From positions 1 through 64,000 of the forward strand of contig MCFE01000446.1 of the NCBI GenBank assembly GCA_002104905.1: a stretch of DNA of 64,000 nt. The letters are read 5' to 3'. Below the pieces are notes generated by a model. It searched no databases, was not told the DNA's origin, and worked only from the letters and a program-made list of their open reading frames with translations. The stretch comes from Basidiobolus meristosporus CBS 931.73 (Eukaryota > Fungi > Basidiobolomycota). A program made the translations under genes and the position numbers. Of the stretch, positions 12,642 through 64,000 are shown piece after piece (position 1 is the stretch's first letter; the number at the start of each line of letters is the position of its first letter).

Positions 12642-12723
12642 TGATGAGGGTGGGGTTCGAACCCACGCCTCCGAAGAGACTGCGACCTGAACGCAGCGCC
12701 TTAGACCACTCGGCCACCTCACC
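12642..12723 (-). tRNA. tRNA-Leu(CAG), second copy
   Basis: Identical 82-nt sequence to 2485-2566; TTTT a few nt downstream. Confidence 0.97.
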
Positions 12724-36633: not shown

Positions 36634-37077
36634 ATGATCAAGTTTTTCAAGTCCAAGCCCTCGAAAAACGCTAGCAGTGCAGTTACGAGCACTGATGGTA
36701 TGCGGGAGGATATCAACGAGATTGTCGACACGATGGATCAAGGAGCACTCATCAGTATAGTGGACTCTCGGTACCCCTCGGATTCCATGAAAGAAGCTTG
36801 CCAAAGGAGCAGATGGAGAAACAGCTACTCGGCGCCTGGTTGCACCCTCGCCAAGCGCTCTTCCATCGCCTCTTCCTCGGCGTCGATCTCCTCATCCTCG
36901 TCCGAAGAGAGTGTCCTTCATATGAGGAATGGCGTGCAATGGGTGGTCTCCCGGAACAAGCGAAACAACCAGTTGGAAGTCCGAGTATTCCATGATGGCC
37001 AAGCACTCCGGCCTCATGAGACCATGTACCACCTATCACTAGCGAGGAAATACCAGCAATTCTTGAATCAGCACTAG
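36634..37077 (+). CDS. Hypothetical protein (147 aa)
   Basis: Intronless ATG ORF in the gene island; TATAAAA ~60 nt upstream; no recognised motif. Confidence 0.65.
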   Translation: MIKFFKSKPSKNASSAVTSTDGMREDINEIVDTMDQGALISIVDSRYPSDSMKEACQRSRWRNSYSAPGCTLAKRSSIASSSASISSSSSEESVLHMRNGVQWVVSRNKRNNQLEVRVFHDGQALRPHETMYHLSLARKYQQFLNQH

Positions 37078-37245
37078 ACCCCAACAACGATTGGATGGCG
37101 CTTTATTGTATATAGATATATATATATACCCTTTCTCCTTGGATTTATGAACAGATCACATATATATATAAAGATTGGCTGTATAAAACCCTCACTTCGA
37201 GTAACCATCTGTCATGACACCTAATACTTGATGAGTAACCGTGAC

Positions 37246-38013
37246 CTAACCAGACTTCATCAATGCGTCAAAGAATTCAGGGGTCGCGGTCTGAGTGTAG
37301 TCGCTGGACTCCGCAGGGCCGTATGCAGAACGAATGGGCAGCACTCCTGACCAAACCTTCTGGTTCAGCTCCTCGCTGCTCACATCCTCTTTGTCATCCT
37401 TTGGGGCCCCGGCTCTAACTTTGGCACTGGCAGTTTCGATTTGAACGGCGATGACCCCGGTGCTTTGCAGATCGATCTTCCCTGGGGGCTTGCTATCTTC
37501 CCACCTATCCGCAGTCCGATCGCCATGCTGTGGGAGAAAGCAACCGGAGGCCTGGTTGGTGATGTATTTCAGAGCAGTCAATTTCTCTTCCGGGTCAGTC
37601 ACCAGCCTGCCGTAGCCAAAAACGCACGCGGAGCGGTAGTTGAAGGAGTTGTGGAACGGGTTGATGGCATAGACGATGCCATCCAAGTGGGTGACCGTGA
37701 TATTGACCTTGGGCCTGGGGGCGTCTGAATTGCGGGGCCCCAGTGCTTTGATCAGTCTTCCGCTTATGTAGCCGTGCAGGTAAACCGTATCCTCGATGCG
37801 GGAGTATGCCATGGGCATCACGAGTGGCCAATCCTCCGGCTCTTGCGAGGCATCTTCCACCGTGTAGGGAAGTGCAAAGCCAACGTGGGCAACCAAGCCC
37901 TCGTCGAGGATCTTGTATATGGTAGGCTTGTCGTATTTACCACGCTCTGGCATGCGCTTGACCTTATTGATCGAGCGAGAGGTGGTGGGTGTGAATTCTG
38001 GCTGGGTGGACAT
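37246..38013 (-). CDS. Pyridoxamine 5'-phosphate oxidase-like flavin-nucleotide-binding protein (NimA/Pyridox_ox_2-like)
   Basis: R.PERGKYD..IYKILDEG.VAHVGF, PMAY, VYLHG, ITVTHLDG, HNSFNYRSACVFG, SAKVR.G.P; TATAA upstream. Confidence 0.88.
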   Translation of the reverse strand: MSTQPEFTPTTSRSINKVKRMPERGKYDKPTIYKILDEGLVAHVGFALPYTVEDASQEPEDWPLVMPMAYSRIEDTVYLHGYISGRLIKALGPRNSDAPRPKVNITVTHLDGIVYAINPFHNSFNYRSACVFGYGRLVTDPEEKLTALKYITNQASGCFLPQHGDRTADRWEDSKPPGKIDLQSTGVIAVQIETASAKVRAGAPKDDKEDVSSEELNQKVWSGVLPIRSAYGPAESSDYTQTATPEFFDALMKSG

Positions 38014-38386
38014 GTTGGCTAATCGATGGGAGAAGGTGGATGGAGGCTGCCTCCTTATAAAGGATTTGCTTAGTAATCTCCACTAGGTCAGATTCCTACC
38101 CACGCTGGGTGTCCAGACAGCGATTGGCGTGGTGATACAGAGCCTGTATTCCGCTGTGAAGGGGCGGTCGATTATTTGCGATGACTTCTTGTCAGTCACC
38201 GTAGCCGGAGTTGGGTGGCGGTGGCTTTCTGAGAAGTATCCAATTCACCGGATGCCATCCCTTCCCACTTCAGGGCAGTCACCTTAACCGGGTTGGTGAT
38301 CTTCCTACGCATGATCCAACCTGGATCCTCCCATCGTGCCGAATTCCGAGCAAATTTTCCTTCGAGCCCCCAATCCGGCCCACAAC

Positions 38387-39381
38387 ATGTATCTCCTTTA
38401 CTTGGTCCGCTTCGGGTACCTACTGATCACCGCCTCCGCCATATGCGCTTCGACCTTGCCGCAACTACGCGTCTCCATACTGGACTACGGTAAGCTCAAC
38501 GAAAGTCCCGGCTTACCAACCAAATACAAGGGCACTTGGATCGCTACTCTGCGCAATGTCCAGGTTCCGAAGCGTTGGTTCCAGCATTTCTATCTGTTCG
38601 GGGTGATGTGGAACCTATGGTTGTTGCTGGAGCTCACGGGCTGGCTGTGCTGGGCCAAGCGCGGTCTCCTGCTGAGCTTGCTGTACACGTGGGATACCCC
38701 AACCGAGGTGGATTACCTAGGCTCGGCAGAGATTGCGCTCTACGCTCTGGTGTTGACTCAGTTGCAGCTGGCCCGCAGGACGTACGAAGTGTTTTTTGTG
38801 GAGAAGCCCTCGGAGGCGAAGATGCATCTCGGCCATTATCTCGTTGGCCTTTGCTTCTACCTAGCGGTAAGCCTTTCGGTGTGGTTGGAGGCGGCGGGGA
38901 ATCTGGGCCTGTACAGCACAGGTAAGTTCGACCTGAGCCAAGGAATAGAGCCGGCGCCAACCCGAATTTTCTTCCATTTCTAGCGGGACCGAAACTATCT
39001 GTCGCTCAGCTGTTCACCAGACCTGTGCCCCTGCTCTGCGGCACCGTGTTGTTCGGGTACTTCTCCTACCGACAGTACCGTTGCCACCTCATCTTGGCCC
39101 AGCTACGTCCCGGCCCTAGCAAGCCTGGACCCCCGAAGTATTTCATCCCGAGAGGCGATCTGTTCGAGTACGTGACGGGAGCACATTACTTTTGCGAGAT
39201 CATGATCTACTTCGCCCTCTGGTGGCTGGTTGGCCTCACGAACATCACCATGGGCCTGAGCTTCTCATGGGTTCTCATCAACCTAGGGATCATCGCCAGG
39301 GAGACCCACGGCTGGTACCAAAGCAAGTTCGGCGCCAGCTACCCGCCGAGCCGACGAATCCTATTCCCGTTCCTCTACTGA
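38387..39381 (+). CDS. DFG10: Polyprenol reductase (SRD5A3/DFG10, steroid 5-alpha-reductase family), intron 38922-38983, ~310 aa
   Basis: DYGK, VPKRWFQHFY, ARRTYE, KMHLGHYLVG..FY, Q.RCH.ILA.LR, IPRGDLFEYV..AHYFCE, TH.WY..KF, PFLY end. Confidence 0.9.
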
Positions 39382-39485
39382 ATAAATCCACGAGTAGCGA
39401 AGCGGTGAAAAGAGCAAGCATTGAGGTTTATTTAATTACACATTTTGAGAAGAGGACAAAAAGGCAAATGAGGGAGGGGAATGAG

Positions 39486-40475
39486 TTATACAAGAAGGAC
39501 CGCGTTGATGCACCCGTCGTTTTCGGGGTTGTTCGTGATTTGGGCGTATTTTCCCCACACGACCTTACCGCCGGTTGTGACGAGCCCCAGTTCGCTCACG
39601 TTCACCTCGATCACCGTACCCTTCGTGAGAACACCCAGCTGGGTGAAGAACGGACTCTGAGGGTTTTTCTTCACCCCGATGATGGGAAGGTGGAAGGTGG
39701 CCCCGAGCTCGGGATGGGTGACGTGGGCCTTCTTGTAACGAAGGGCCATGGGTCGGATGAAGCGTTCGTACTTGGGTGGCTTACGGGTGAACCCGTCCCC
39801 GACGAAGGTCGCCTTGGTGACCATTCTCTTCCACTGCTTCGTCTTGCTCTTACCGGTCTTGATCACCTTGAACATCTCGTCCTCGGCGATACCCCGGACC
39901 TTGGGCAGAGGCACGTTCCACTTGCCCGCCTTCTCCTTACGCTTCTGTTTGACCATATTCGAGAGCACCTTGGCCCGTTTCTCTCCGTCACGGTCCAACA
40001 GGTAGGCAGGTACCGCGCCGGTGGGCACCGCGTCGTCGCTCTTCTGCTTCGCCGACTTCTCTTCGTGCTGTTTGATGGCCTTCTTCATCTGGATCTTCTC
40101 CGAGTGGCGCTTCTTATTGTACATCTTCGCCTTCAGACCATGGATCTTCTGGGCGTACGCCGCGTTCTTGTGAACCTCACGCGCTTCTCTCTTACGCCTG
40201 AGGGTGAGGGAGGGGAAAAGGAAGGGAGGGGTGGAGGGTAAGTGGTTGGCCTAAAGGGGAACTTCTCGTCAGGTGCAACTTACTTGCGCTCTTCATGATC
40301 CATACGACGTCCATGACGCTTGATGGACTCTTCAATGTGTTCGTTTTGAGGCTAGGAAGCAATGGCTGGGTAAGTCAAAGGAAGCAAGTGCCGAGGTGAA
40401 GGTCGGGTTGTCGTTGGAGGGGAAAGAAACTGGGCGAGGGCGGGGCGGGGCAGGGCAAGGAACAACACCTACCAT
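39486..40475 (-). CDS. NSA2: Ribosome biogenesis protein NSA2, 3 exons (40475-40473, 40351-40284, 40197-39486), 260 aa
   Basis: Spliced [26 protein letters not shown]; [12 protein letters not shown]; [11 protein letters not shown]; [22 protein letters not shown]. Confidence 0.97.
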
Positions 40476-41117
40476 ATTGGAAGCTTTCTAAACGGACAAA
40501 GTGGAGTTCTGGGAAAGAAGCCAAACCGGAGTTCGCTTCAGGTGGAGAAGAAATATTTGGGAGGGGGGGGGAGGGACGGTGAGAAGGAGGGGGATGGCAG
40601 GAGGGATTTTTTTTTCTTTTCTTTCACTTTCTTTTCAAAATTTCCCCTCCTCTCCCCTCCCCTCCTGATCCGCCGTGACAGGTGACTTCAACTCGAAGTT
40701 CGGTTAGGTTCGTGGTTACGCGTCGGGATTTTGGTTAAGTGTCGGGTTAGGGGTTCCGATTTTTTTCTCGCTCCACGACAGATGGATTTTTTTTCAGGGA
40801 TCCCGTGATCCGCAATCCACCCACCCACCCTGATTTTATGCGATGAAGTTGAAGTACCGTGACAGTGCCATGGAGTCGTATATTTGGCGTTGCCTCAAAC
40901 AATATTGACAGTCCTGGGGCATCGCAATGTGCATCCTCTCAGTAGCCAATGATGTTGTAACCAGTCATGGATGATGCCATAATTTAATGAGATGTGCGGT
41001 ATTCCACTTACTATGGGCGGCCATCAAAAGTGGCATAACATGCGAGCCCTGGTTGAGTTGTCAATTCCCACCCAAGAATTACTATCAACGGATATTTCCC
41101 CTGCCTCAGTCTAGCTC

Positions 41118-42794
41118 TTACATTTTTCGTGAACGCATTGGAGCAACCTCCCTCCTTCCCTCCCTCGCCCACATACCGGGTATTACCAACAACTCTATCA
41201 GTCGGTATGCACTTTCCCAGGTGTCGTGGCTGGTTGGGGGACTACAGGTTCTCCCCCCCCTAACGACGCTCTTCGGAAGCCCAGGAACGAATAGCTCAGC
41301 CGTCTCCAAGTCTTGGTGTGAAGCTGGAACGTACGATTTGGTGGCGTGGTCCAACGTGACTGCCCCGCTAACTATATGAGGTGCCCCCGTGGGATTTTGA
41401 CGAAGGTAGAACGGGAATGGCGTTGGCTCCCTGGTACCTTTCGCGTATCCGCCACAGGAGCCGGAGTGAGTGGGCCAGATGTGTTGGAGACGTAGTGCCG
41501 CATCCAGGTAGAGCCCGTAGCTTCCGGAGCGCCTGGTGAGGTATCTAGCCAGTGCAAAGCAAACCAGCGAGAAGGAGAGGAGCACACCGACAACTGCCCA
41601 AAATCTCCGGTCCACCACCAACTCCTCGCCAGAAACTTCCCACATCATCAGCTCCTGGGCGAACGCTCCCTGCCAATAGAGCAGCTGGACCATCATGAGA
41701 TCCGCCGATGTGAGGGCCTCTCGCACTCGCTGTATCCCCGTCATCTTCTCGCCCCGGGAGATGCCCTCCGCATCACTGGGCGCCATTCTCGAGCCCAACA
41801 TCCAGAAATCCTGGATAAACTCCACCTCCACGTAACGGCCCAACTCTGCGTAATTGTACATTTCCCCCATCGGCCCGCGATACCCAGCAACTATGGCTTG
41901 GTGGCATCCGTTTCTGTGGCACCACTTCAGCCCGGATTCCATGCTCAATTCCACCCAGATACTGCCATCGTAGGTTTGCCATTGGGCTAGGCAGCTTTGA
42001 TCGGCTGGAGTGATGCCGATCGCGGGCAGCAAGTGCATGATGGAGGTAATCTCATCATAGTTGAGCTCCATCGTGATTTTGATAAGATTCCCCTTGGTTG
42101 CTTGGGTGAACTTTGGGTGGTAGCGCGTCCTTGGGATTGGGTCATCAGAAGAATCTACGTAGGGCACGGTGCAGTTTTCTCCACTGTGCCAGGGCTTGGT
42201 TGGGTCCACGTCGGGGGTTATCGAGATCGATACCAGATGGATTTCACTCTGTACGAACTCCCCCGGGAACTGAACACTCTCCCGAGCACCTGGCAACTGG
42301 TTCTCCAAAGAAAAGGAGTGACTAAGGCCAGTCCACCTGCTACGTGGCTTCATGAACACCGCGCCGGAGGCGGGGAATTCCGCGGGGATGGTCACCTGTC
42401 CCGTATATACCGGTCCGGTCATGCTCTTGACGATGTAAGGGGACAGTTTGTCCAGGTATGCTACCCCACTACCACTCAGGAGCAGCCCAACCAGTAGGAT
42501 TCTTAACCAACCACCTGCAGGCAGCCATTGTCGCCATGTCCATTTGGCGGCGGCGGGTGTGTCTCCCAGTAAAATCGATAGGCCGGCCACCACCGGGCCC
42601 CGGGAGGCCAACTGGGCGCGGAGTAGACAAAGCACCCCGTTGCCAAGTAACGCCAGGGTGAGACTGAGCACAAGTACCGCTTCGCTGATCCCCAATCCAG
42701 CTGATGCGGTATAGGTCACCTGCGCGTTGACCGCGTCGGTGGCATTGGCGGCCAGGGTGGCTTGGAATTTCTCCCCGAAGTCACTAAAAGTCAT
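41118..42794 (-). CDS. Orphan multi-pass membrane protein (558 aa; two N-terminal TMs, large luminal domain, C-terminal TM)
   Basis: Long intronless ORF with TATATA ~95 nt upstream and a decayed tandem paralogue; no family recognised. Confidence 0.8.
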   Translation of the reverse strand: MTFSDFGEKFQATLAANATDAVNAQVTYTASAGLGISEAVLVLSLTLALLGNGVLCLLRAQLASRGPVVAGLSILLGDTPAAAKWTWRQWLPAGGWLRILLVGLLLSGSGVAYLDKLSPYIVKSMTGPVYTGQVTIPAEFPASGAVFMKPRSRWTGLSHSFSLENQLPGARESVQFPGEFVQSEIHLVSISITPDVDPTKPWHSGENCTVPYVDSSDDPIPRTRYHPKFTQATKGNLIKITMELNYDEITSIMHLLPAIGITPADQSCLAQWQTYDGSIWVELSMESGLKWCHRNGCHQAIVAGYRGPMGEMYNYAELGRYVEVEFIQDFWMLGSRMAPSDAEGISRGEKMTGIQRVREALTSADLMMVQLLYWQGAFAQELMMWEVSGEELVVDRRFWAVVGVLLSFSLVCFALARYLTRRSGSYGLYLDAALRLQHIWPTHSGSCGGYAKGTREPTPFPFYLRQNPTGAPHIVSGAVTLDHATKSYVPASHQDLETAELFVPGLPKSVVRGGRTCSPPTSHDTWESAYRLIELLVIPGMWAREGRREVAPMRSRKM

Positions 42795-43199
42795 CGGTAC
42801 TAGTGGTGAAGGTCGGTATGGTCAATCAGATGTTGGAAAGGACAGATCTTATCTGGAAAGCTTTGGCTACCATGCGGAGCGCTTCTATATACCGCGACCA
42901 GTTGCGCCACTGAGACCTGGTGGGAAATCCCGACTGGATCCAGATCCGGTTTTGGGGATCTTCTGGCCTGTCTGGTGCAGACAAAAGCGGTGGATTCAGG
43001 TGGAGCCCGATGGAATCTTTGTAGATTCGATGATCCGGTTTCTCCGGAACCACCTTCCCTTGCCGTGCATGGTCGAATCCCTGCGATCCTCTAATGACAG
43101 CGGTGTAACCACCGGCATGTGTATGAAGGTGTAGCCGGTGGCTTTCTATGTTCCGTCGGACTTGATTGAAGGGATACAGTGGGAACATGTCTATCCTGG

Positions 43200-44132
43200 T
43201 TTCCGCCGCACTATTTCCTTAGGGTCTCACCGTTGTCACCCGACGGTGTGAAAATACGGATTTCCTCTGTGACCTGGACATATGATTTGGTCGGTCCTCG
43301 AAAAGTTCGGTGCTCCCTACCCCTTCACAATCCACGACCTCCCACCTCCCACCTCATAATCCCAGCCGTTGCATCCTGCAACTCCGTAGAAGGGCTCGAA
43401 GCACCCTGGACATTCGGTGAAAAATCTCGATTCCCTTTCTTCCGGTACTCCTGTCCCTTCTGGCTTCACCATGGTGGATTTTCTTTAATCGATTCCCATC
43501 GTCCATCATTTCATCTAGCTGTATATGGTGTGACCGAAATGGATTCCAGACACCGCGGGTACGGTTGTATAAATCGGGTTTGGGTCCCACTTGTACGGAT
43601 CCACCTCCTGATTCTACCTACCAACCTTGTGCCATCTGATAATTCATGCCGCATGATTTCCGATCCCCTTGCCCTGGTGGGCCTTTTTGTGTAGGGAAGA
43701 TCAGGATTTGCAGATTTCAAACTGTGGGCCATGGTCAACCAACCCCATCTCCCTCAACCTGCAGAACATACCATGCTAGATGGTGTCTGGTAATGGCAAC
43801 AGATCCCCACAAAAGTAGTCATGCTCCCTAGTAAACACAGAACATGCCAAAATTGGTAACTCTGCTGAAAGTCACCCCAGTAATAGCGCAAGCAATTGGG
43901 CCACATTGGATGTGGGGTCCTGCATAGAGTGGTCCAAAATCTCCCAACTTCCTGCCTTGGAGGTTGTGAAGGCTCCTGCTGTGCCAATTTCCTGGAACAG
44001 ATCCTTTGCCAGGACCCACTTGGAATACTCCACCAAAATGTCCAACACCCAGGCCATCAAAATCAGATGGGTGGTTGAAAAGCCCTCAAATCTGGTGCAT
44101 ATGCTCTTGGATCCTTTCTGAGCCTGGTCCAT
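43200..44132 (-). pseudogene. Pseudogenised tandem paralogue of the 558-aa membrane protein
   Basis: Colinear fragments: LLALLLGD vs LSILLGD; RWGWLTMAHSLKSANPDLP vs RWTGLSHSFSLENQLP; VDPYKWD..TTVP vs VDPTKPW..CTVP; DQIICPGHRG vs HQAIVAGYRG. Stops and frameshifts throughout. Confidence 0.7.
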
Positions 44133-45721: not shown

Positions 45722-47520
45722 CTTTATGAGAAATAATTGTAATAATCTAGTCAAAAAACCATCACAAAGTTAAAATCCAGTGACTAAGAGGTATTGATCC
45801 TGTCAGGACACTGTGCACAGACTTTAAAAAATAATTGCACCCCAGATTTCACAAAAAACTTGGTCAACATTTTTCATCACAACAATACACAATTGGCTTT
45901 TGATTGGTTCCTTGCCATTTCTCTCACTTTCTGACCCCAGACACTGAGTTACCTCCTATGTTTGTGTACATTGATTGGCAATTGCCTCTTTTGCACACTC
46001 ATTTCTCATCACTTAACCAATGCACTTACTTTTCATGCATACAAACTGATTTATTTCAATTCAATAGTCAGGTTTACTTCCGCTGAAGCTTCAGTTGTAC
46101 CTCAATTGCCAATTGTACTGACCTATACAAGTCCTTATACCCAACACCAACATTAGGCCCAACCTCATACTCAACAAGCAACTCCATTAAAATCCACCAC
46201 TCAAAAAGTATATCTGCTGTAGCACCTTATTTGCATTACTTTGGCAGGAACCCTATGGCTTTATGCTACTGTTCAATCACTTCTTGGCTTAGCCAATACT
46301 CTTACTTTTCATGCATGTAAATTGGTTCATTATGGTTGAATCTTTTGTTTTGACTCAATTGCAACTGCACTGTCCTATACAAGTCCCTTTAGCAAACACT
46401 AGTGTTAAGCCCAACCGCACACTTAGCAAGTAACTACATTAGGATCACCTATCCAATAAGTATTTCTGCTGTAAGACCCTTGATCCATGACTTTGGTGGG
46501 AACCATATGGCTTTATCCCATTATCCACTTACTGGTTCCCATATATCCTGGTCTTCAGCAGGCACTACAGAGTCAAGCACCTCATCTGCCAGTCTTTGCA
46601 ATAAGCCCTTGCAATACTTAGGTGCATTTTCTTGTGCACTGCTCTGGAAGAAGTGCTGCAATCTCTTGGTGTGCCTATTGATGTTCTGAAATTCCACTGT
46701 AGGCAATGTGAAAGTCTTCTGAGCTCTTGGTGCTGTTGCTTTGTCATTCAGTGGGATCTCCACTCTGTCTACAATGAAGGATGTGGAGGCTGCAGAAGAC
46801 AAATTGCCTTTCACTGCAAACTCATCTACCTCACTGAAGTGTTGCTCCACTGACGGTGCTTCCAACTGATGTTAAAACAGCTGTTTGTGTCTTGGTAGTT
46901 CTTCTTGGCTATGATGTGATTCAGACTGTTCCAGGCTTACAGCATTCATTGGTGAGAACTACAGCTTTTCTCTCATGCTTCTCTATCTCTGAACTTGGTA
47001 GACTTTTTCCTCTTTACCTTTACCTTTATTACTCTAATGTCATTCACTGCTGATTTAACTGAGTGCTTTGAGTACTGTACTACATTTTCTACTTGTTACA
47101 TACTGCACTGGTGCATCTGCATCTGCCAGCATGTCCCTCACCATAACTTCTCTGGTTACCTGATATTTCTTTGCCACTTTCTCAGCACTTAGCCCTGCTT
47201 GCAATGGAATCTTGGGGAAGCTGCTAGTTTTAGCTATGGAACCCTTTTACTTCTGCCTTTGATAGTTCCTGTTATTCTTAAGATACTTTCCTAGCATATC
47301 AATGCTAGCCCAAAATCTGTTTGCTGGTATAAGTCCAGGATAATGCACATGGTACAGATCAAGCACATTCTGCCCAGCCTTGAGTTCCTGATGGTCTCAA
47401 TGTATGCAGCCTCAAGGGGAAGGCATTCTAGGCTTTTTACAGCCTCTTGGATATTAGCCTGCTCTTGGTCATTGCTCTCAACAGCCCACAGATCTTCATT
47501 AACTTGTGATTTTGGGCTTT
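45722..47520. mobile_element. Left arm (decayed TIR plus accessory ORF on minus strand) of a Tnp2/CACTA-like family member
   Basis: Begins CTTTATGAGAAATAATTG (vs CCCTATGAAAAATTACTG) and is colinear with ~53224-54960. Confidence 0.75.
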
Positions 47521-48024
47521 GGTATAGGTACCACAGACTCTCCCACCCTTACTTTGTTAGGTTTTTTTGTGGTCTTCATCTTTGGTGTTGTACTTCAACA
47601 TCTAAAACTTGGCCAATTTTACTCTTTTAGAAATTTTAGTACCCTGACTGATTTTCCTTAACCCAAACATACCTAATCTGTTGTGTTGTATTATAATTAG
47701 CTTGGGGCTTGTTCAACAATGTAGCGGCTTATTAACAATATATTACAACTTCCAGTATGCCTATACTGAAATGGTTTACTGGGAGTCTGATATACCAATA
47801 GAAGATATAACTTTCACTAGTATCCTCAATCTTAGGCTCAAAATATACTGTAGGCAGTGTTTCTCACTTGTACAGCAGTGTTCTGACCTTCTATTGACTA
47901 TTGGGCCTATTTACTTTTATAGTAACCTTTTCTTATCTGGAAGTCACTTTCCTAGCTGAGAGAACTATTACTAATCTGGAAATTCTGAACTCCACTTCAA
48001 CCTAGCATGGTGTGGTGTAGAACT

Positions 48025-48560: not shown

Positions 48561-49364
48561 TGTGGTAGGGTAAACATACCTCCCACAGACAAGTTTATTC
48601 ATATAGTCATTATGATATATTTATCCATATTTTATCTTATCAGTATTATCCCATTCTTCTTCTGCCCATATTATCAGTATTATCCCCATATGATGTTTAC
48701 CCTGATTAGTTATTAGCATTAGTTATCCCAGATGTTATTCAGCTTTGTGATCAGTAGATGTATCTATATAAGGCAAGTACCCGCGTCAGTACCTGTGACA
48801 CATGACCTAGGTCTGTGTTACCATCCCTACCATTTCAATACCATATATGGTATTTCTATGTTGTACAGGTTTCAGACTACTGATTCCTGATTGGTTGAGA
48901 GTGCTGTGCCTTTTAGAACCTTCCAGGACATTCTTGGCATATTTTTAGCACATAGTGATGTCATCAGGAATTCCACTGATACATAGAATCTTCTAGAACC
49001 ATGTCATTAGTAATCACTTGGCAATCAGGAAAAGTATTTAAGGGAAAGCAATCCCTCATCAATAAATCATCCCTTCTATCAGTAACACTTCTACCTTATT
49101 GATTAGCAGTTGATCACTGCACCTGCCTTCAACAGTACATCTCAGACCTGCCATCAAGGAGCTTTTCAGGGTAGTGCACAAGACACACAGAGGCCTTTGG
49201 AGACACTTGGAGCACCTAGGAAGCTAGAGAAGCAGGAGTTTTTACCATAGTGACATATTGACAAAGACACCAGCAGTTTAGACACAGAGGTTATTGCACC
49301 CATCAGACACCTCACACACCTTGAGTTGTGTAGCTTCTCCCAGGAGTACCTCTACACCACCACA
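48561..49364 (+). mobile_element. Solo LTR (804 bp)
   Basis: TGTGGTAGGG...TACACCACCACA ends; near-TSD ccac/ccgc; core shared with 58376-59446; AATAAA at ~49040. Confidence 0.85.
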
Positions 49365-50348: not shown

Positions 50349-50857
50349 TGTGGTGGTGTATATATCCAAGGGAGAGTTATGTCCAACACTTCTTTAGTGT
50401 TTTGTATATGGGGTGCTCACTAGGTGGATAGCATCTGGCAAAACCTTGCTAGGAATACTTGGGTTCTGTCATGACTCCAATGTGAAGGGGAATAAAGCCA
50501 CAAGATTGTCAAGGGAAAACTATTGAGCTACAGTCCCCAACTTAGTTTGCATCCTGACAAAAGTATGTGCCAAATTCAGCATCTGTTGATATGACAATGT
50601 AATAAAGCTTCCAAAGTCAAAACAACAGTAAACTCCACCAGCAGGGACTTGACAAGAATGCAGCTATGGTTCATATTTTTAATGACAAAAAAGTATTTTT
50701 GCCTGTCAAAGAACAAACTTGGAAAATATCAAATAAAATAAAAGATACCTACTCTGAGTACTCACAGGTAGTGCCTCCATAGTCAAGTTGCTGTCAGAGC
50801 AGTTTCCTGGAAGTGTCCTGTGGTCTAGGATTGGAATATCAGGTAGTGGCAGGTAGC
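50349..50857 (-). mobile_element. Inverted 3' half of an LTR, truncated by a DNA-transposon end
   Basis: Reverse complement of ~58930-59446, starting TGTGGTGGTGTATA. Confidence 0.85.
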
Positions 50858-52580
50858 CCCTGTGAAAACTAATTTGGTCCTGCAGGTGGATCCAATCTGG
50901 ATCAGCCGTCAGGATCCCATTTGGAGACCATCATAATACCAGCAGCTTGCTATTAATGACCCTCTTAACAATTTTATGACAGGATCACAACGGCAATTGG
51001 CAAATTTTACTACCCAATAAAGTTAAAAAACTTGATGGGGTTTGATTGGTGCTGTGGCAATATTTGAATGGCATTGTTGCAGTCTTATTGCACTCAACAA
51101 CTATTTTAAATGGATCTAACTGGCTAGTACATCCAGTTGCATTATATGGCAAAAAATGTGACTGTGTTTTAACAGCCTCATTGCAAGTCTTTATTTGCAT
51201 TATCATGGCAGTATTACAGCCAAAAGCTAGTTCTGTATAATGTTACCATACCATTTCACCAGGTGTTATTCCCTTTTTCCACCTCCCCTTGCACAACTCA
51301 TATATTCCATTGTAGAGTAGCCCCTGTTTATTTGCTAACCCACTATACCTTGGTTATCCCACATATAGTTCAAATCAAAAAAAACTATGGCCTCCTGCTT
51401 ACAATCCTCTACAAACACACACACCTGCCGCAATTGACATACTTCTATCACCTCAACTTTACGGCTTTTTGGTGTGATACTTGCAAAGTTGCCGTATACC
51501 TTGGACTGCTGGTAACATATACATATCGCAAACATATGCTTGGTTGCCACCACTTCTGCCATGGATACCTCCTGAATATTTGCAAAGAACTTTTTGGTAT
51601 TTAGCCAATATACTCCTTCTCCCTACTAGATTCTAGTCCCCCTTATAGGTGTGCTCTGGCTCTTGTTTGTGCATATTCTGTGTAGAATGGTGCAGAATTG
51701 TCTTATGACCAAGAGAAGCCCAGCCTACTTTGGTAGATGCTTTCCTAATAGAAATTAGTTGCTTGATGCACCAAACCCAGCTTTGCATTGCTTAACTGAT
51801 TACCCACTTGTTGGGGCTGCTTAGCTTCTTAATTCCATAGGCATAGGTGTTGCCATGTGCACATCTGTCCTCAGTATTTTCCACCACTTCCTGGCTGTCC
51901 TCAATGTACCAACTCATCACATCCATCACAGAACATGAAGGTAATATTCTTGATGAGATTGGGATATGGTAATACCTGCAACTTGACTTTTCTCCCTATC
52001 TCCCCACACATTTGCTCCATAGGAAACTCCCAAAAGGTGAAGCAAGGCACAATACTCTCCACACACCAAGCAAGAGGGAGTAGAGAATGGATACAGTAGC
52101 GGCAGAGATCTACATGTTCAGCTTTATGTTTGTAGTATAGCCACTCAAATCCTGTTACAAACTCCTTGCACAACATTTGTAGATTGAGTCAAGTTGACAT
52201 TGGTGATCTGCTTCTGGATAAATATTCCTACAATGTCCACATATGACTCCCAATGCTTCCAATGTACTCCTGGTAGGAATGGCTTCACAATGTACTTTAA
52301 TAAATACATATCTGGCTCATCCGGTCTTTGCATTTGTATTGTTGCATATGTGTATGAATATTGATTGGAGCCTGTGAGAAGTACTTAGGGTAGCAGATAC
52401 TCCGTAAAATCTTGCCAATTCTTTCAAACTTCTCTAGTATCTCAAAGGGCTCATATAGCTTGAAATGCCCCATGTACAATTTGGTCATCAGCAGAGGGAT
52501 ATTATTGAAAAGCAAATGCATTGCTCCCAGTGGAAAACATTTGCTCCAACAGATACCCTCTATCTTAAGTATCTCCACAC
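50858..52580 (-). mobile_element. Right half of the Tnp2/CACTA-like transposon, inverted, without the LTR insertion
   Basis: CCCTGTGAAAA terminus at 50858; transposase motifs LPLGAMHLLFNNI and GPCFTFWEFPME on the minus strand; shows the empty site ggtatacggcaact. Confidence 0.88.
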
Positions 52581-53259
52581 ACTATCTGAGACTATAGGCG
52601 CTTTCTATAGATTTTACTTTAGGGGTAATATTCAAACACAGTGCCTGATAGTGCCAGTAGACCCAGATAGTGCCATACATTTTTGTGACATGTTACAAGC
52701 CGCAGAAGCTAGATTCAGAGTGCCATGGGTATTGAGTGCCAGATGCACTTCTTCACTCCTTCTGTGCTCTTACCCATTATGCACAATACTGATCCCAAAA
52801 AAAAGGCAAAAAATGGGCTTTATCCAGTACAATGGGTGAAACACCAGGGCTGTTTTGCCTGAAAATGAACAACATTTTTCACACAGTGGGGCCAAGTATC
52901 AGTCCACTTGGCCTCCTTGGCACACCAAGGCATCATATGGCTCTCATGGCTGAATAAGGCACTATCCAGTGGAAGAAGTCTAATATCTATGTGCTTAGTT
53001 CTAGCATGAAAAGTTGGATTTCTACCTAATTGTATACATCCTTGATTATCTTGAAATGGAGTAATAGGCATTTTTTTGACATAGGCCTAAATCTGTTAAA
53101 AGCCTCCCTATTCACATTGCTTCTTTTGTAGCTTCACAGGCTGCCATATACTCTGCCTCTGTGGTAGAAAGTGCTACAGTTGGTGGCTTTCTTGAATTCC
53201 ATGAAACTGCTCCTTTACAGTAACCCTATGAAAAATTACTGTAATGATCCTGTCAAAAG

Positions 53260-55163
53260 GCAGTCACAAAGTTAGAGTCCCGTGACTATGAGATACTGAT
53301 CCTGTCAGGACATTGTCCAGAGACTGCTGAAAATAATTGCACCTCAGATTTTACAAAAAACTTGGTCAACATTTTTGATCACAACAATGTATAGGTGTCT
53401 TTGATTGGTTCACTCCCAATTTGCTCACTATCTGATCCCAGACACTCTATCACCTCCTATATTTGTGTGCATTGATTGGCTATTGCCTCTTTTCACACTA
53501 CTTGCTTCCTGACTTAGCTGTTTCTCTTACTTTTCACACGCACAAATTGATTTATTTCCTTTGAAACTTCAGTTGTACCTCAGTAGCCAATTGTATTGAC
53601 CTATACAAGTCCCTATACCCTACACTAGTATTAAGCCCAGCCCCATACTCCACAAGTAACTCCTTTAAAATCCACCACTTAATTAGTATATCTGCTGTGA
53701 CGCTCTGTTTCCACAACTTTGATGGGAACCCAACAGCTTTATGCCACTGTTCATTCACTGGTTCCCACATGTCCTAGTCTTCAGCCAGCACTGCAAGGTC
53801 TAGCATCTCATCTGCCAGTCTTTGCAATAAATCCTTGCAATATTCAAGTGAGTTTTCTTGAGCACAGCTTGTGAAGAAGCTCTGCAACCTCTTGGTGTGC
53901 CTATAAATGTTCCAAAGTTCCACTGAAGGCATTGTGATAGTTTTTTGAGTTCTTGACATTGTAGCCTTGTCTGTCAGTGGGATCTATACTCTGTCTACAA
54001 TGGAGGATGTGGAAACTGTGGTAGACAAATTGCCTTTTTCAGCAAACTCATCTACCTTGCTGGAGTGTAGGGCAGCTAGCTGTGCTTCCAACTCTTGTGA
54101 AAACAGTTGTTTACTTGTTGGTAATTCTTCTTGGCTATGAAAGGATTCAGTCTGTCCCAGGCTTGCAGCATTAATTAGAATACCTGCAGTTTTTTTGCAT
54201 GCCTCCCTGACTCAGGCTTGTGTAGACATTTTTCCCTTTACCTTTTCCATTATCACTGCCAGGTCTTTCACTGCTACATTGTCTGAGTGCTTCTTGTAAT
54301 GTACTACATTTTCTCCTTGATAAATTCTGTGCTGACATATCTGTTTTGGCCTGCTTGTCCTTTGCTGGCACTCTTCTGGAGACCTGATGATTCTTTTCCA
54401 CTGATTTCAAGCTCTCAACTGTAGTAGTAGCAGGCTCCTGTAAAAGCCGCTGGTTTTTAACACTGCCAGGTCCTTCACTGCTACGTTGACTGAGTGCTTC
54501 TTGAGGGATACTATGCTTTTCCTTGATGAATGTTGTGCTGGTGCATCTGTGTCTGCCTGCTTGTCCCTAATGGGCACTCTTCTAGCTACCTGACATCTCT
54601 TTGATGTTTGTCTGGAGCTTTTGGCTCTGCTTGTAACAGGCTCTTGAGGAAGCCGCTGGTTTTTAGCCATGGCACCTTTGTTCTTCTGCCTTTGATAGTT
54701 TCTGCTATTCCTGAGATACTTTCTTAGCATACCAATACTGGCCAAAAATCCATTTGCCTGTTTGAATCCAGGAATAATGCTCATGGAACAAGTCAAGTGC
54801 ATTCCACCTGGCCTTGAGTTCCTGATGGTTCCATGGTATGCCAGCCTTAAGGTGATGGTGTGCTAGACTTCTAACAGCCTCCTGAATATTGGCCCACTCT
54901 GCATTATTGCACTCAATGGCTTCACAGATCTTCAATGTCTTTTGATTTTTAGACTTTGGTGTAAACACCACATTGTCTCCTTCCCACACTGTGATAGGTC
55001 TTTCTGTGTGCTTTATCTTTGAGCACTGTTGTTGTGCTTCAAAGACTGTATAATGTTCCTCTGCTGTTACATTGGGTAGCAGCTCAAATCTTGGCTGTGA
55101 CATTGAGCTACTTGAGTTCCTTCTTTGCATCAAAGATACCGCTTTCTCTACCTGGAATATCAA
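53260..55163 (-). pseudogene. Accessory ORF of the DNA transposon, divergent from the transposase
   Basis: Broken frames ..VRSLAHHHLKAGIPWNHQ..KW.. and RHTKRLQSFF..LQRLADE..; conserved in the 45.7-47.5 kb copy. Confidence 0.65.
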
Positions 55164-55840
55164 TAGCTCTATATGTATTATCCACTCATCCTATTTCTGG
55201 ACTATTTCCTGATTTCTCTGGGCCTTTGCATCCTATCCTATCAGCCACTGCACCTAATTGCTTCATTAGTGCTTTGGCATGAGCTGACAATATACTTGCT
55301 AATATGGATGGTGGTGACATTATGATAGCCACTTGCTGGTCTCCACTTAGTGTACTGCATTTGCTACACTTGCACCTGCCTTAGCATAACAGTCTGCTTG
55401 TGGCTCCACAGAGGTTCTCAATTACCTACTTGACTGAGAGCCTGAGCAGTCCGCATTATCAACTTCAGTGGGCACACTGCCAACATGGCCTTTTTTGGAT
55501 GTAGCCCTACTTGTTGCACTGAATATCAAAGCAAGCTGTTGTCCAACCATTGTTCTGTTGCCATCAGCAGTGGGGCTTGGTTGGGAACCAGACAACTTTG
55601 CTTTATTTTTGGGTGGTATATATCTGGAAGTGAGTCAAACCAAAGAGGAAATAGTGTATATATACACATGTATGTGGTGCCACAACTTTATTTATAATGC
55701 ATACTATGGTGAGTTGTCATTGAATCTAACATTAATGTAGGTGCAATGTCTCAAGTACAAGACTTTCTTAAATTCACAAGAGTATTGACCAAAAAGTGAT
55801 ATAAAAGTGTTATGTTGTTGAAGGTCAAATTGCTTGCCCC

Positions 55841-58300
55841 ATGAACAAGACTACTTTGACTCAATGCCATAAGAGAAGAGAAAAAAGACCATGCGGCTAT
55901 TGTAACAAGCTACTCAGCCATGAAGCATGCAGACAGCATAGGAAGTATTACAAGAATCATGGGCAGTGTATTGCTATCCAAGTCATATTTGACCATTCAT
56001 TGATCACTACTGTACCAACATTATCTTGCCGGCCAGTTAATACTTCTATATGGGTACCTGGCCATCTTTGTCACCTTGAGCAAACTGAATCAGGTGAGTA
56101 TGCAACCCCTTTAGGCTTGCCTTAGCCTTCTGAATATGGCACACAGAGTGATAGCTCTGACAAAGAAGGTTCACTGATGGATTGCGAGCCTATCTCCCCT
56201 AACAGCAGTACCATGTATGAGCTTGGTCAAATCCTAATATGCAATGAGACAACACCCATTGAAATAAATGCCAAGAATACTTTATGGAGCCAAGTGAGCC
56301 CAGTAATCCATCTACTGGTGAATGATGTAGTGTTGTGGCTAGAGTAGTGGCGTGTTTCCACTAATGTTAGTTATGGGGGCTTGGAGGATATATTGCTACT
56401 TCTTGCCAAAATCATTCCAGGATGCAACTTACCATGTACATGATACAAATGGACAACTGTCATGTGGCTGACAACATAAGATCCTGAGACTGTCCTGATT
56501 CCAGCATGTGGTAACGGTGACATGGCATTCACATCTAAAAATGCTATCATTGCAATGTGTCCAAATTGTCAGGAATCCACTACCATTGAGGGAAATATTG
56601 TTTGCACCCCAGATATATTCCAGTAATACCCTGTCTGAAGAAGCTTATAAAGTCCAACAAATATTGCAAAGCTATACAGCACTGCACTCAGTAGCAATCA
56701 TGTGCAAACATATCCAATATAATCAATGGCAAACATTTCAAACAGCTAAGACGCAAGGGCTACACTGAAGGTATGTATGACCATGCCTTTGCCTTAGCTC
56801 CTGATGGATTCTCATTAAGGAAGTACTCTACCAGCAATTCCTGCTGGCCACTGATTCTCATCAATCTGATTATGCCACCCATCTTACAATATCAGAGCAA
56901 TAACCTGATGGTAGTCTCACCAGTATCTGGACCTAAATCTCCATCCAACCTGGATACCTACCTGTATCCATAGCTGGATGAGTTTCATATGCTTTCCAGT
57001 GGGATAACAGTTAGTGGCTGTCAAGTAAAAGTGCATATTATTATCTGCTTTGGAGATACCCCAGCCGTCAGCAAGATAGCAGGTTTTTCCAGGCACAATG
57101 GATGGCATTGCTGTCCAATGTGTGAGATCCAGGGGATTTACTCTATTACTCACACACATTATTGTTACCCAAACATCAGCACTAAGCACATCATCTTTCC
57201 ACAGAGAGAATGTACAAAAGTCAGCATGCAATTGCAGCAAAGTTGACAAGGTATTAGCCATTGGCCAGAATATGGAATCAATCAGAAACCAGCAATACTT
57301 CAAGATAGAGGGTATCTGTTGGAACAAAAGCTTACCACTGGGAGCAATGAATTTGTTTTTCAACAATATCCCTATACTGATGACCATGCTGTACATGGGG
57401 CACTCCAAGCTAAGTGAGCCCTTTGAGATACCAGAGAAACTTGAAAGAATTGACAAGATATTACAGAGTATCTGCTACCCTAATCACTTCACACAGGCTC
57501 CAATCAGTATTCATACACATATGCAACAATGCAAATGCAAAGACTGGATGAACTAGATATGCATTTATTCAAGTGGTGTTCTGAAGCCATTCCTACCAAG
57601 AGTACATTGGAAACATTGGGAGTCATATATGGACATTGTAAGAATATTTATCAAGAGGCAGATCATCAAAGCCAACTTGACACATGTACAACTGTTGTGC
57701 AAGGAGTTTGTAATAGGATTTGAGCGGCTATACTACAAATATAAAGCTGAACATGTAGATCTCTGCTGCTACTGTATCCATTCTCTACTCCATCTTGCAC
57801 AGTGTACAGTGAATATTGGGCCTTGCTACACCTTTTGGGAGTTTCCAATGGAGCCAATGTGTGGGGAGATAGGAAGACAAGTCAAGTTGCAGGTACTCCC
57901 ATATCCCAATACCATTGAGAATACTACCTTCAAGTCCATCATGGATGTGATGAGTTGGCATATGGAGGACAGCCAGGAAGAGCTAGAAAATACTGCTGAC
58001 AAATGTGCACATGGAGACACCTATGTCTATGGCATTAAGAAGCTAAGCAGCCCCAATGAGTGGGTAATCAGTTAATTAGTGCAAAGTTGGATTGGGTGCA
58101 ACAAGCAACTAATTTTTATTAGGAAAACTCTACCAAGATATGCTGGATTTCACTTAGTCACAAGCCAACTTCAACATCATTCAACACAGTGTTCACACAA
58201 ACATGAGCCAGAGCACACCTATAAAGGGGACTAGAATCCAGCAGAGAGAAGGAATATATTGGCTAAATATCAAGATGTTCTTTGCAGATATTCAGGAGGT
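55841..58300 (+). pseudogene. Tnp2/CACTA-like transposase pseudogene
   Basis: N-terminal CGYCNK..RQH; LAPDGF..WPLILINL.MPP..GPKSP.NLDTYLYP; GDTPAVSKIAGF..HNG..CCPMCEIQG; LHLA..IGPCYTFWEFPME. Confidence 0.88.
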
Positions 58301-58375
58301 ATTCACGGCAGAAGTGGTGACAACAAAGCATATGTTTGCAAGATGTATACATTACCAGCAGTCCAAGGTATACGG

Positions 58376-59446
58376 TGTAGTGGGGTGACAGTGACACCCA
58401 CTGACAGATGTGCTCATTCCCTTATTTTCTACTTCCCTATATTGCTACTACACTTATTTTAGTTTTATCCCATTTGTCTTACCCAATCAGTACTATCCCA
58501 TAAGCCGGTTGACTATCACACCTGCTTACCTTATTGCATAAGTTACCCCTCACTTTATGTAAGATTACTAGCTATAAGTACTTCTATATTAGGCAAGTAC
58601 CCACGCTAGTACCCGTGACACATGATCAGCCCGTGTCACCATCCCTACCATTTCCATACCATATATGGTATCCCCATGTTACACAGGTTTCAGAATACTG
58701 ATTCCTGATTGGTTGGATGTGCTGTGCCTCTTAGAACCATCCGGCACCTACTTAGAACATTCTTAGGTCATTCTGATGTCATTAAGATTTCTATTGATCT
58801 CCGGAACCTTCTGGAACACCATGATTAGTAATCACTTAGCCAGTGAGAAAAATATATAAGGGAGGCTATCCCTCAACAATAAATCATCATCCCTTTTATC
58901 AATATACCGACTTGTTGATTAGTGTGATCACTGCTACCTGCTGCTACCTGAACTTCCAACCCTAGACCACAGGACACTCCTAGGAAACCGCGCTGACAGC
59001 CAACTGACCTTGGAGGCACTACTTGTGAGGAATACTCAGAGTAGGTATCTTTTATTATATTTGATTCTTTCCCAAGTTTGTTCTTGTACAGGCAAAGATA
59101 CTTTTCTGTCTTTGTAACTATTGACCACAGCTGCATTCTTATCAAGTCCCTGCTGGTGGAGTTTACAGTTGTTTTGACTTTGGAAGCTTTAGTACATTGT
59201 CATCTCAAAGGACGCTGAACCCAGCACATACTTTTGTTAAGACGCCAACTAAGTTGGGGATTGTAGCTCAATAGTTTTCCCTTGACAAGCTTGTGGCTTT
59301 ATTCCCCTTCACATTAGATTAGAGACAGAACCCAAGTATTCCTAGCAAGCTTTTGCCAGAGGTTATCGCACCCAGTGAACACCCCACACACAAAACACTT
59401 GAGAAGTGTTGGACGTATCTCTCCCTTGGACTTATACACCACCACA
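58376..59446 (+). mobile_element. Solo LTR (1071 bp) with perfect 4-bp TSD ACGG
   Basis: TGTAGTGG...CCACCACA ends; ACGG at 58372-58375 and 59447-59450; TATATAA at ~58854 followed by AATAAA; empty site visible in the 51.5 kb copy. Confidence 0.93.
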
Positions 59447-62400
59447 ACGGCAACTTTGCAAGTACCACACCAAAAAGCCGTAAAGTTGAGGTGATAGAAG
59501 TATGTCAATTGCAGCAGGTGTGTGTGTTTGAAGAGGATAGTAGGCAGGAGGCCATAGTTTTTTTGATTTAAACTATATGTGGGATACCCAAGGCATAGTG
59601 GGTAAGCAAATTACCAGGGGTGACTCTACAGTGGAATATATGAATAGTGCAAGGAGAGGTAGAAAAAGGAAATACCATTTGGTAAATTAGTATGGTAGAA
59701 TTATACAGAACCCATTGTAGGCCACCATACTGCCAATATAATGCCATCAGAGTCTTGCTTAGAGCTTGTTAAAATACTGTCAGGTTTCTTGCCACATAAG
59801 GCAATTAGATTTCCTAGCCAGTTGGATCCATATAAAATAGTTGAAGAGTGCAAAATGACTGCAACAATACCACACAGTTATTGTCACAGCACCAATCAAA
59901 TACTGTCAAGTTTTATCACCATATTTGGTAGTACAATTGGCAAAATACTGTTGTGATCCTGTCATAAGATTGTTATGAGGGTCATTAACTCCAAGCTGCT
60001 GGTATTATGATGTTCTCTTAGCGGGATCTTGATGGCTGATCTGGATTGGATCCACCTGCAGGACCAAATTACTTTTCATAGGGCAGTAAAGAAAGGTGCA
60101 TCCTGCTGGATCTTCTGTCTTACAAATTTTGTCCCCAACAATTATCAGAGTATCCCACAAGATCCTGTTCTAAATCCTTATAAGTGTATCTTAAGCAGAT
60201 ATCAAAAGTTCCTTTTAGGTATCTAAAAATCTGCATAGCTACTGCAATATGATCAGATCAATAGTACTGATTATGTTGGTTGACAACTCCCACTCAATAA
60301 AAATATCTGGACATGCTCCAGGCATGATATGCATCAGACTTCTGACAATAGACTGATATGGAAAGTCAGGGCTCTCTAATGGCATTGAGCACTCTTGATT
60401 TGGTTGAGTTTTGACCAGGTTAAGGTTTGTCTCCATAGGGGTAGCTGTTGGTCTACAGTCTTCCATTTGCTACTTCTTTAGTATATCTTGAATATACTTG
60501 GATTAGTATTGGGTGATAATATGGGTACTTCTGTCTATGGAGAACTTAATCCATAAGTAATAACTGAGTTCTCCAAGATTGGACATCTTGAACTCCTTAG
60601 ATAGGCTGGATTAAGTCTCTTCCAATGTTGCTAGATTATTGGCAGCTATAATAAGATTACCCACATTTACAGCTAATAGTACTGGAATTACTCTATCTGG
60701 CTTATAGTAGATACTATAGTCAGCATTACTCCTTTGAAACTCAAAGATTCCAAACAAGAATCTATCTTGCAATTGCAGGGTCTTAGTGATTGTTTGAGAT
60801 CAAATAGAGACTTTTTAACCTAAAAGGCCAAATGGGGGTTATCTTAGTCCACAAATCCTTCAGGCTGGCCCATATACACATCCTCATCAAGTTCTCCATT
60901 CAAAAATGCAGCTTTTACATCCATTTAATGAATAAAAAACATATATTTGGCAGCAATAGCCAATAATAACCTGATGGAATTAAACTTGGCTACCAGTGCA
61001 AAGGCCTCAGTATAGTCTAATCTGTTTGCTTGAGAGTATTCTTTGTCCACAAGTCTTGCTTTGTATCTTTCAACTGTATCATCAGCCTGGTATTTGTCCT
61101 GAAGACCCATCTGCATGCAATTGATCATTGGCTAACTGGTAATTTGCCTAAGTCCCAACTTTGATTTTTCATTGGGGCCTGATACTCCTCAGTCATTGCA
61201 GATCTCCAAAACTTGGTCTCAGGGCTATTTAAGGCCTCTTTTACAATCTGGGGCTCATCAATATGGACTAAATAGGTATAGGCTAAGTTTGTACCCTCAT
61301 TGATAAAGTAATTTGGGCTGTTTCTTGTCCAGTTGGATCTCTGGGCATTTGATACTGGTATGATCACTTCTGGGATATTCCTGGGCACCAATTCATGCTG
61401 AAGTACAGTTATAGAGTCCTCTGCAGTGAGAAATTCTTCATTGCTTTGCTCTGATTCAATTCTGACAATTAATGGACTTGAAATCAGATTTTGTCATCAT
61501 GTGATATCATTTTTGTGAAAATTATGAATTTTCATCAAACAACTCATTGCTGGACTTGATCAGCTTCCTTGCTTTTGTATTTTAGAGTCTCTATGCGTTA
61601 CCTATCTTGAAGTAGCCCAAAAATATGCATTTTACACTTCTTGGCTCAAGTTTTGGCTGATTTCTGGGCAGTTTCTTGGCATGTGCTATGCATCCAAATA
61701 TCCTTAGGTGCTCTGCACTTGGTCTGTATCCATACCATGTTTCAAATGAAGTATGATCACAAAGTATTCTGCTATAACTTCTATTTCAAGGTATACAGCT
61801 GTGGCAACTGATTCTGCTCAAAAATCATAGGATATATTTTGATTGTGGATCATAGATCTTGCCATATCAGTTATCAATCTGTTTGCACATCTGGCTACTC
61901 TACTTTGCTGTGGGGAGTATGCTGCAGTAGTCTCTTGCTTTATCCCATGAATCTTGCAGAAGTGGATGAAGAGTTTTGAGGTATAATCTTCATTGTTGTC
62001 AAACATATTTTCTTGATCTTGTCACCAGTTTCTCTCTCCACCATGGCTTCAAACCCCCTGAACTTAGATAGAGCTTCTTCCTCTCTCTCCATGAAGTAAT
62101 CCCACATGTATCTTGTATAATCATAAATAAAAGTGATTAAATACTTCATCCCGCCTAAGGATGAATTTTGCATAGATCCACACAGATCTGAGTGAGTTAG
62201 ATCTAATTTTTTCCTAGTTTTGATCAGCCCAGAGCCCTTGAATAGCTGCCTGGCTTGTTTCCCAAATATGCAAGCTTCACAGTGCTCCAAATTAGTGGGG
62301 GGGAGCTACTATTACTCCGGAAATTAGCTGACCTTTGATCATTTTGCACAAATAATAAAATTTATGTGTCCAAATGTCCTGTGCCAAAGCATTGGTCTTT

Positions 62401-64000
62401 ATTCACTTAAGCTACTTACATTAGCTTCCAGATATGATGGAATATAAGTCAACTTGTATATATTTTGATTGCTGATACCCACAGCAATATGGGTACCATT
62501 TTAATCAGTGATCCTGTGACCAGAATTGTCAAAGCTGAAACTGAGTTCTTCCACAGTGGCCTTGCTCGCAGATAGTAGGCTCTTGGCTACTTGTTGTACA
62601 TAGAGTACTTCTTTAAAAGTCAATATATGGCCTCCTTCACTGCTTTTGGGTTACTTGGATAGTTCCTTCTCCCACCGCATCAAGTGTTATATTGTCACCC
62701 ATGAGAACCTTCTGCATTGGGATTTCTTGATATTGGGTAAAAAGTTCTTTTTGGTGTCTAAAGTGTTGAAATGCTCTAGAGTAAGTAGACCACATCTGAG
62801 AATCCTTATTTGCGGTCATATCTAATGCAGATATGAATGGTCTATCCTCATTTGTTGCAGCATTTCCATATTCAGGCTTTTATTACCATATTATCTCTCT
62901 TTTTGAGAAACTGGTCTTACGTGTGTCCTTTCCGTTTGCAGTAGTTGCAAGACAGTCTGTTGTTGCCTTTTTGGGTCTTTGGTACCTCCTTTATTGGTTA
63001 TCATTGCTTATAAAAGCATTTTGTTCTTCCTTCTTATTGGTGCTTGATTCTCTTAATTCTTAATCCAGGAGCCTTCCATATATGTATTTAAGGCCAAATT
63101 TTCAGCTCTGGACTCTAGGGCTGATACAAAGCCCTGAAACTCACCTTTTGGGCTATTCAGGATGGTAACTATCATATTCTCATCAGTAGTTGGCTCACCC
63201 ACAGATTCCATCTCATCTATCAGCAGGGTAATTCTGTTTATTAGATTTTTCATTTCTTCTGACTGCATCTTTGTAGTAAAGAATATTTGTCTCAGATACA
63301 TTTTCTTTGAAGCTGAATATGACTAGTAGGTATCATCTAATGCCTTTCAGGCATTCTTTGCTGTTTTGCACCTAAGCATTGAATTAGCAATTTGTCATTA
63401 ATAATAAGGCCAATGCAGTTAAAGGCACTCTGTTCTTTCTTCTGGTACTTTATGGCTTCCTGTCCCCCTGGTGTGATCTAAAAGATGTTGCTCTGAAGCA
63501 TGTGCATTGACCCAATGCATGTTGACTCAATGTGGGGCACTCTGGTAAAGGTTGTTGACGTAGTCTGGACTGATGTGTGCCGGCGTGCTGTGGTTGCAAG
63601 AGATGGTAAGGAATCCAGCAAGGCGTGCTGGCGCAATCTGGACAATGTTGCTCATGGTCTGTATTCTTCCTGCTGAAGCTCACCATCTGATTCCTCAAGG
63701 TATTCACTTACCCTCTGTCTGATACTTTGGAGCTGTTGCCTGGAAGAGTCCTGTGTATATTGCTCTTGGAAGCCACTTAGCGCTACCAATATACCACATA
63801 GTACATTGGACATGTGAGGCAAAAACTCATTCAAAGTCTCTTTGGTTCCCAAAGTTGAGGCACAAACAGACACATCCGGCCCGTACTGTGCAAATTGCGC
63901 GCAAAATTGTTCCCACGCGGCTTCTTCATCAAATCCACTCACTCTCAGCTCATTCTTGATTTCAATACTTGTCTTGTTTTATATCTTCTTACATACATTG

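Follow-up and report, generated by a model that had tools for sequence, protein, structure and literature searches.

A dead CMC-like DNA transposon with CCC...GGG ends and a 6-bp target-site duplication in Basidiobolus meristosporus

We analysed the first 64,000 nucleotides of contig MCFE01000446.1 of the fungus Basidiobolus meristosporus CBS 931.73 (assembly GCA_002104905.1), a stretch that we call the window, where a copia retrotransposon is interrupted by a 6860-bp DNA transposon (53224-60083). We conclude, with a probability of about 85%, that this is one old, dead and formerly autonomous transposon of the CMC (CACTA/EnSpm-Mirage-Chapaev) group that inserted into the copia element and duplicated six bases of the target, CAGTAA, on either side. 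The duplication of 6 bp of target is genuine and can be read from the sequence. An earlier reading of the same DNA, made without database searches (the sequence-only reading), had called this length atypical, and it does lie beyond the 2-5 bp of the CMCT clade (PMC12730594) and the 3-4 bp of Chapaev (PMC4079192). The further proposal of that reading, an undescribed lineage with a different cleavage stagger, goes unsupported: the window contains no second complete copy, and a single insertion does not establish a new lineage that makes a wider cut. The question has some weight, as the length of the duplication is used in the classification of DNA transposons and mirrors the geometry of the complex between transposase and target.

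The boundaries of the element and the target-site duplication

The element begins and ends with exact 11-bp terminal inverted repeats, CCCTATGAAAA on the left (53224-53234, plus strand) and its reverse complement on the right (60073-60083, minus strand). Each of them is adjoined on its outer side by CAGTAA, at 53218-53223 on the left and, in an identical copy, at 60084-60089 on the right; the inverted ends and flanks described by the sequence-only reading are thus read at 53218-53234 and 60073-60089. Four further pieces of the same family, at about 20.1, 22.5, 45.7 and 50.9 kb, were recovered by BLAST in the window, in agreement with the partial copies already reported (74-87% identity; copies A, B and C and fragment D, detailed below). 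We tested the boundaries with alignments of the copies taken with 20 bases of flank. In every alignment, the similarity among element copies starts or stops precisely at CCC or GGG: the left inverted repeat coincides with the start of the homology with copies B and D, and the right one with the end of the homology with copies A and C. The boundaries, which had been described as well fixed, are indeed fixed, because the homology in four other tips breaks exactly at CCC/GGG.

A duplication of length k was taken to be present when the k bases just outside the left tip are identical to the k bases just outside the right tip. Around the fixed tips, the flanks agree solely at k = 6. The chance of six matching bases beside two fixed points is 2.7e-4 given the base composition, and the empirical rate of such 6-bp flank matches in the window is 3.2-4.2e-4. 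We also considered shorter duplications lengthened by chance matches and rejected them: duplications of 3 or 4 bp are geometrically impossible with these boundaries, because the left flank ends in TAA or GTAA and the right flank starts with CAG or CAGT, respectively.

The insertion site lies in the RNase H coding region of the copia retrotransposon, which is encoded on the minus strand and is decayed on both sides of the insertion (RNase H part downstream of the insertion at 52820-53217; upstream part at 60090-64000, reaching the end of the window). The copia frame is kept when the element is taken out together with 0, 3, 6 or 9 bases, and taking out the element plus 6 bases yields GCTFLYCKGAVSW. 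The window contains a single further copia RNase H, at ~44.9 kb, with ~70% DNA identity to the host copia. Up to the SW of the conserved motif, it has the 13-residue spacing of the rebuilt empty site. This bears out the claim that removing the element and one CAGTAA restores both the frame of the copia and the spacing of its motif. When the site is aligned at the DNA level to this paralogue, the removal of 3 and of 6 bases score equally, and only the protein spacing separates the two.

The transposase gene and its relatives

The element carries a dead transposase gene (55805-58072, plus strand) that is spread over two reading frames with several in-frame stops. The sequence-only reading had recognised motifs of the Transposase_21 type, and the corresponding Pfam family (Tnp2, PF02992) matches with 36.1 bits on 56695-56970, above the cut-off of 28.6; a colinear second match follows with 15.7 bits on 56974-57243. 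No family except Transposase_21 passed its cut-off in the Pfam scan of the element's reading frames. The catalytic core (56797-57123, plus strand) contains APDGF with the first D (56797-56811), FGDTPA with the second D (57049-57066), and CPMC with the C(2)C motif (57112-57123). Further downstream on the same strand, the region 57779-57853 contains HSLLH with the H(3)H motif (57779-57793) and FPME with the catalytic E (57842-57853). In an alignment with 12 Tnp2-type relatives, all five stretches fall on the conserved D, D, C(2)C, H(3)H and E positions, i.e., on the signature defining CMC (summarised in PMC12730594).

With the longest open piece of the transposase (172 residues) as the query, a full HMMER search retrieved 805 relatives at E <= 0.001. 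The closest one, with 45% identity, is a single-member cluster from a 1.6-kb ENA contig, and the remaining ones are about 25-44% identical across the matched stretch. The nearest full-length relatives are Tnp2 proteins of mushroom fungi (about 30-37% identity). Relatives that bear a name are from Agaricomycetes (Schizophyllum, Agrocybe, Botryobasidium) or are metagenome proteins titled 'Transposase family tnp2', and most of the long relatives that were scanned carry Transposase_21 (PF02992), some of them together with DUF4218. A word-based protein search with the same 172-residue piece gave no match, its length limit having left out full-length transposases.

The right tip is contiguous with the 3' region of the transposase in this copy, in copy A and in copy C, with the same junction. 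Because this contiguity is found in three copies, the tips and the transposase belong to one element.

The accessory gene and the subterminal repeats

Head-to-head with the transposase lie the remnants of a second, accessory gene (53555-55190, minus strand), broken into several frames. No Pfam family matched it, and the look-alikes returned by an Atlas search were unnamed hypothetical proteins only. The remnants hold a tandem duplication of ~206 bp (54250-54674), the units of which are 71-91% identical.

The subterminal repeats pointed out by the sequence-only reading were found again: the window contains 5 exact matches to the 10-mer GATCCTGTCA, every one of them subterminal in copies of the element. 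Three are in the element studied here, all in one orientation. The left subterminal region (53246-53307, plus strand) has two exact copies, at 53246-53255 and 53298-53307, which are 23 and 75 bases from the left tip; the third (59955-59964, plus strand, in the same orientation as the left pair) is 129 bases from the right tip. This right copy is part of a 27-nt direct repeat (53233-53259 versus 59942-59968).

Decay of the element and the nested solo long terminal repeat

The extent first given for the insertion, 53218-60089, holds for the ends and the duplication, but it includes ~1.07 kb that are foreign to the element. The 1071 bp at 58376-59446 (plus strand) have TG...CA ends and are flanked by a 4-bp duplication, ACGG (58372-58375 and 59447-59450), and copies A and C run straight across 58375/59451. 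Because of these ends, these flanks and the uninterrupted copies A and C, we assign this segment to a nested solo long terminal repeat (LTR) and not to the transposon, whose length is about 5.8 kb without it. Two related LTR pieces are present, one at 48763-49126 and one, directly adjacent to the tip of copy C, at 50349-50857.

The ratio of observed to expected CpG is 0.08 in the element versus 0.96 in the neighbouring reading frame of an ABC transporter. This depletion fits a long methylation-type C-to-T decay, which accounts for the many stops in the reading frames. With its many stops, its CpG ratio of 0.08 and its nested solo LTR, the element is dead. The solo LTR has a CpG ratio of 0.28 versus 0.08 in its host element, and is therefore younger; its ACGG duplication contains a CpG.

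Other copies of the family in the window

The other pieces of the family are all partial. Copy A (20136-21493, plus strand) is internally deleted and has an intact right tip at 21493. Copy B (45722-47584, plus strand) corresponds to the side of the accessory gene, and its left tip at 45722 has decayed to CTTTATGAG. Copy C (50858-52572, minus strand) carries the 3' part of the transposase and has its right tip at 50858. Fragment D (22499-22733, minus strand) has its left tip at 22733, where it reads CCTTGTGAAAAA. The sequence-only reading had advised collecting all copies that have both ends. Run on the window, this collection returned the present element and no other: neither a search for CCCT[AG]...[CT]AGGG pairs nor a relaxed tip search of the window gave a second two-ended copy. 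The opposite flanks of the partial copies, sought via nested repeats, were not found within the window. In metagenome contigs, the exact 19-mer conserved in three right ends had no match, and a protein-based scan gave no further copies.

On visual inspection of one translated stretch, the flank of the right tip of copy A (21600-22100) resembles a fragment of a reverse transcriptase of non-LTR retrotransposons. At its right tip, copy C borders without a gap on an LTR of the family of the nested solo LTR, from LTR position ~558 (50349-50858); copy C was therefore inserted into this LTR. Beyond the window, the scaffold continues for 9.6 kb (64001-73629), and the other flank of copy C may be located there. 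Copy C breaks off at 52572/52573, at element position ~4072, which is only ~250 bp past the point where the copia stops coding. This reflects either an insertion of the copia, equipped with a very short LTR, into copy C, or a truncation of one of these elements. The order of nesting appears to start with the LTR, followed by copy C, the copia, the element studied here and, finally, the solo LTR.

Comparison with known transposons

Judged by the sequence and motifs of its transposase, the element is a member of the CMC group; judged by its ends and its duplication, it is an atypical one. Where CMC elements have CAC...GTG, the complete copy has CCC...GGG, and the right tips of copies A and C agree with it; the remaining two left tips show decay (CTT, CCT). 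In its first five bases, CCCTA, the element departs from CACTA at one position. The sole measurable insertion shows 6 bp, outside the 2-4 bp that characterise CMC (2-5 bp in CMCT). In published systems, the duplication is of 3 bp in CACTA/EnSpm, 2 bp (TA) in ESTA and CNEST, and 2-3 bp in Plavaka. Chapaev, known from animals, makes 3-4-bp duplications and has invariable CAC...GTG ends (PMC4079192), and the CMCT clade, Transib included, has 2-5-bp duplications and mostly CA...TG ends (PMC12730594; 10.1101/2025.05.19.654958). Huge expansions of CMC-EnSpm were reported in Basidiobolus genomes by Muszewska et al., whose account does not describe tips or duplications (PMC5751038).

The likeness to CACTA/EnSpm comprises the Transposase_21 homology, the D, D, C(2)C, H(3)H and E motifs, the short inverted ends (CCCTA here, CACTA there), the short subterminal repeats, the presence of a second gene beside the transposase, and the closest relatives, which are Tnp2 of Agaricomycetes. 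The element differs from them in having CCC...GGG rather than CAC...GTG ends, in the 6 bp seen at one insertion versus 3 bp (2-4), and in its second gene, which is head-to-head with the transposase and of no named family. CACTA/EnSpm sensu stricto have arrays of subterminal repeats that are bound by a second protein encoded by the element; in the present element we count only three copies of GATCCTGTCA, in one orientation, next to the second gene of no named family. With Chapaev, the element shares a DDE transposase of the CMC group, but CAC...GTG ends and 3-4 bp in the former contrast with CCC...GGG ends and 6 bp in the latter. The ends of Transib, CACTATG, resemble CCCTATG. The Transib/RAG1 branch also has C(2)C and H(3-4)H motifs and provides the longest duplication so far in CMCT, 5 bp (PMC12730594); in contrast, the transposase of the element matches Transposase_21 and the duplication is of 6 bp instead of 5.

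The origin of the 6-bp duplication

From what is known of the family, we infer that the element moved by cut-and-paste. The transposase would have bound the ends, probably with the GATCCTGTCA subterminal motifs and perhaps with the second protein; it would then have excised the element and attached its two 3' ends to the two strands of the target in a staggered manner, and the repair of the gaps would have duplicated the bases between the staggered joins. In this insertion, as the sequence shows, the joins were 6 bp apart in the copia RNase H and left CAGTAA on either side. Stops and frameshifts came later from C-to-T decay, and the element also received the solo LTR. Several points weigh against this account. 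The duplication is measured at one insertion only; the published CMC pattern (CAC/CA ends, 2-5 bp) fits neither the CCC...GGG ends nor the length of 6 bp; and transposition itself, like the role of the subterminal motifs, is presumed from the family. It is also possible that the duplication was of 4 bp (CAGT or GTAA) and that two untemplated or donor-derived bases were added at one tip, since the site can be read as CAGT+AA or CA+GTAA and both the sequence and the empty site would be the same. Yet, this demands a further coincidence of 1 in 16, and extra bases are seen at none of the four other tips.

We give roughly even odds to an unusual 6-bp event within a family that normally makes 3-4 bp, in the manner of Chapaev: lengths that vary within a family are documented in the fungal KDZ2 and KDZ3 (4-8 bp; 10.1101/2025.05.19.654958), although a departure by two bases is unusual for DDE transposases. 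A more doubtful proposition is that the CCCTA-ended CMC subfamily makes 6-bp duplications as its norm, with a stagger wider than any described. DDE transposons usually hold one duplication length per family, and the sole clean case reads 6 bp; even the nearest relatives of the transposase are distant (45% identity for one cluster, about 30-40% for the rest), and the ends are atypical too (CCC, not CAC). Against this stands the single measurement, and we can only tentatively suggest that the CCCTATGAAAA-ended subfamily is a CMC lineage that joins target strands 6 bp apart as a rule. If true, the known 2-5-bp range of the CMCT clade would be extended, and there would be material for asking which residues of the transposase set the stagger, in a clade that contains Transib and the ancestor of RAG1 and where the setting of the stagger is of some wider interest. 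A fixed 6-bp stagger in CMC would be a modest but real addition, like the hAT5, hAT6 and hAT7 variants. As found, the result amounts to a single, well-documented case of a dead element with a 6-bp duplication, and it aids the annotation of repeats in a fungus whose richness in CMC elements had already been reported. There are two further rival explanations. The tips and the 6 bp could come from another superfamily (IS3EU, hAT6 or Dada), the Tnp2 gene being a passenger or nested, and 6 bp is indeed the length typical of IS3EU and hAT6 (PMC12730594). However, these two have no transposase homology with the element, whose sole transposase homology is Transposase_21; the contiguity of the right tip with the 3' region of the transposase recurs in three independent copies; no second, internal pair of inverted ends surrounds the Tnp2 gene; and IS3EU has TAYGG..CCRTA ends with long inverted repeats (>30 bp; PMC12730594), which are not seen here. 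We regard such an origin as very improbable. Hardly credible at all is the absence of any duplication, with the CAGTAA repeat being coincidental or a pre-existing tandem of the copia that would read CAGTAACAGTAA at the uninterrupted site. It has a small prior only in its favour; coincidence has a chance of about 3-4e-4, and keeping both CAGTAA adds two residues beyond the 13-residue spacing of the paralogous copia.

Other features of the window

At 23146-23156 (plus strand), CACTATGAAAAC is a canonical CACTA-type tip with one mismatch to the tip of this element family. BLAST showed no similarity to the element after it, and it may be a chance occurrence or belong to another CMC family. Two GC-rich islands (24042-27551 and 36000-44000) have 51-55% GC and a CpG ratio of 0.8-0.96, versus ~40% GC and ~0.1 in the surrounding repeat DNA. 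Their genes are long and apparently intron-poor, and include an ABC transporter of the MDR type, a LIM-domain protein and a Pyridox_ox_2 protein. A U3 small nucleolar RNA is found at 5422-5647. Two signal recognition particle (SRP) RNA genes, one scoring far lower than the other (164 and 110 bits), are located at 5869-6168 and 15406-15695 (minus strand), and two tRNA matches with equal scores are located at 2485-2566 and 12642-12723 (minus strand). The distances between the SRP RNA genes (~9.5 kb) and between the tRNAs (~10.2 kb) suggest a segmental duplication of roughly 10 kb.

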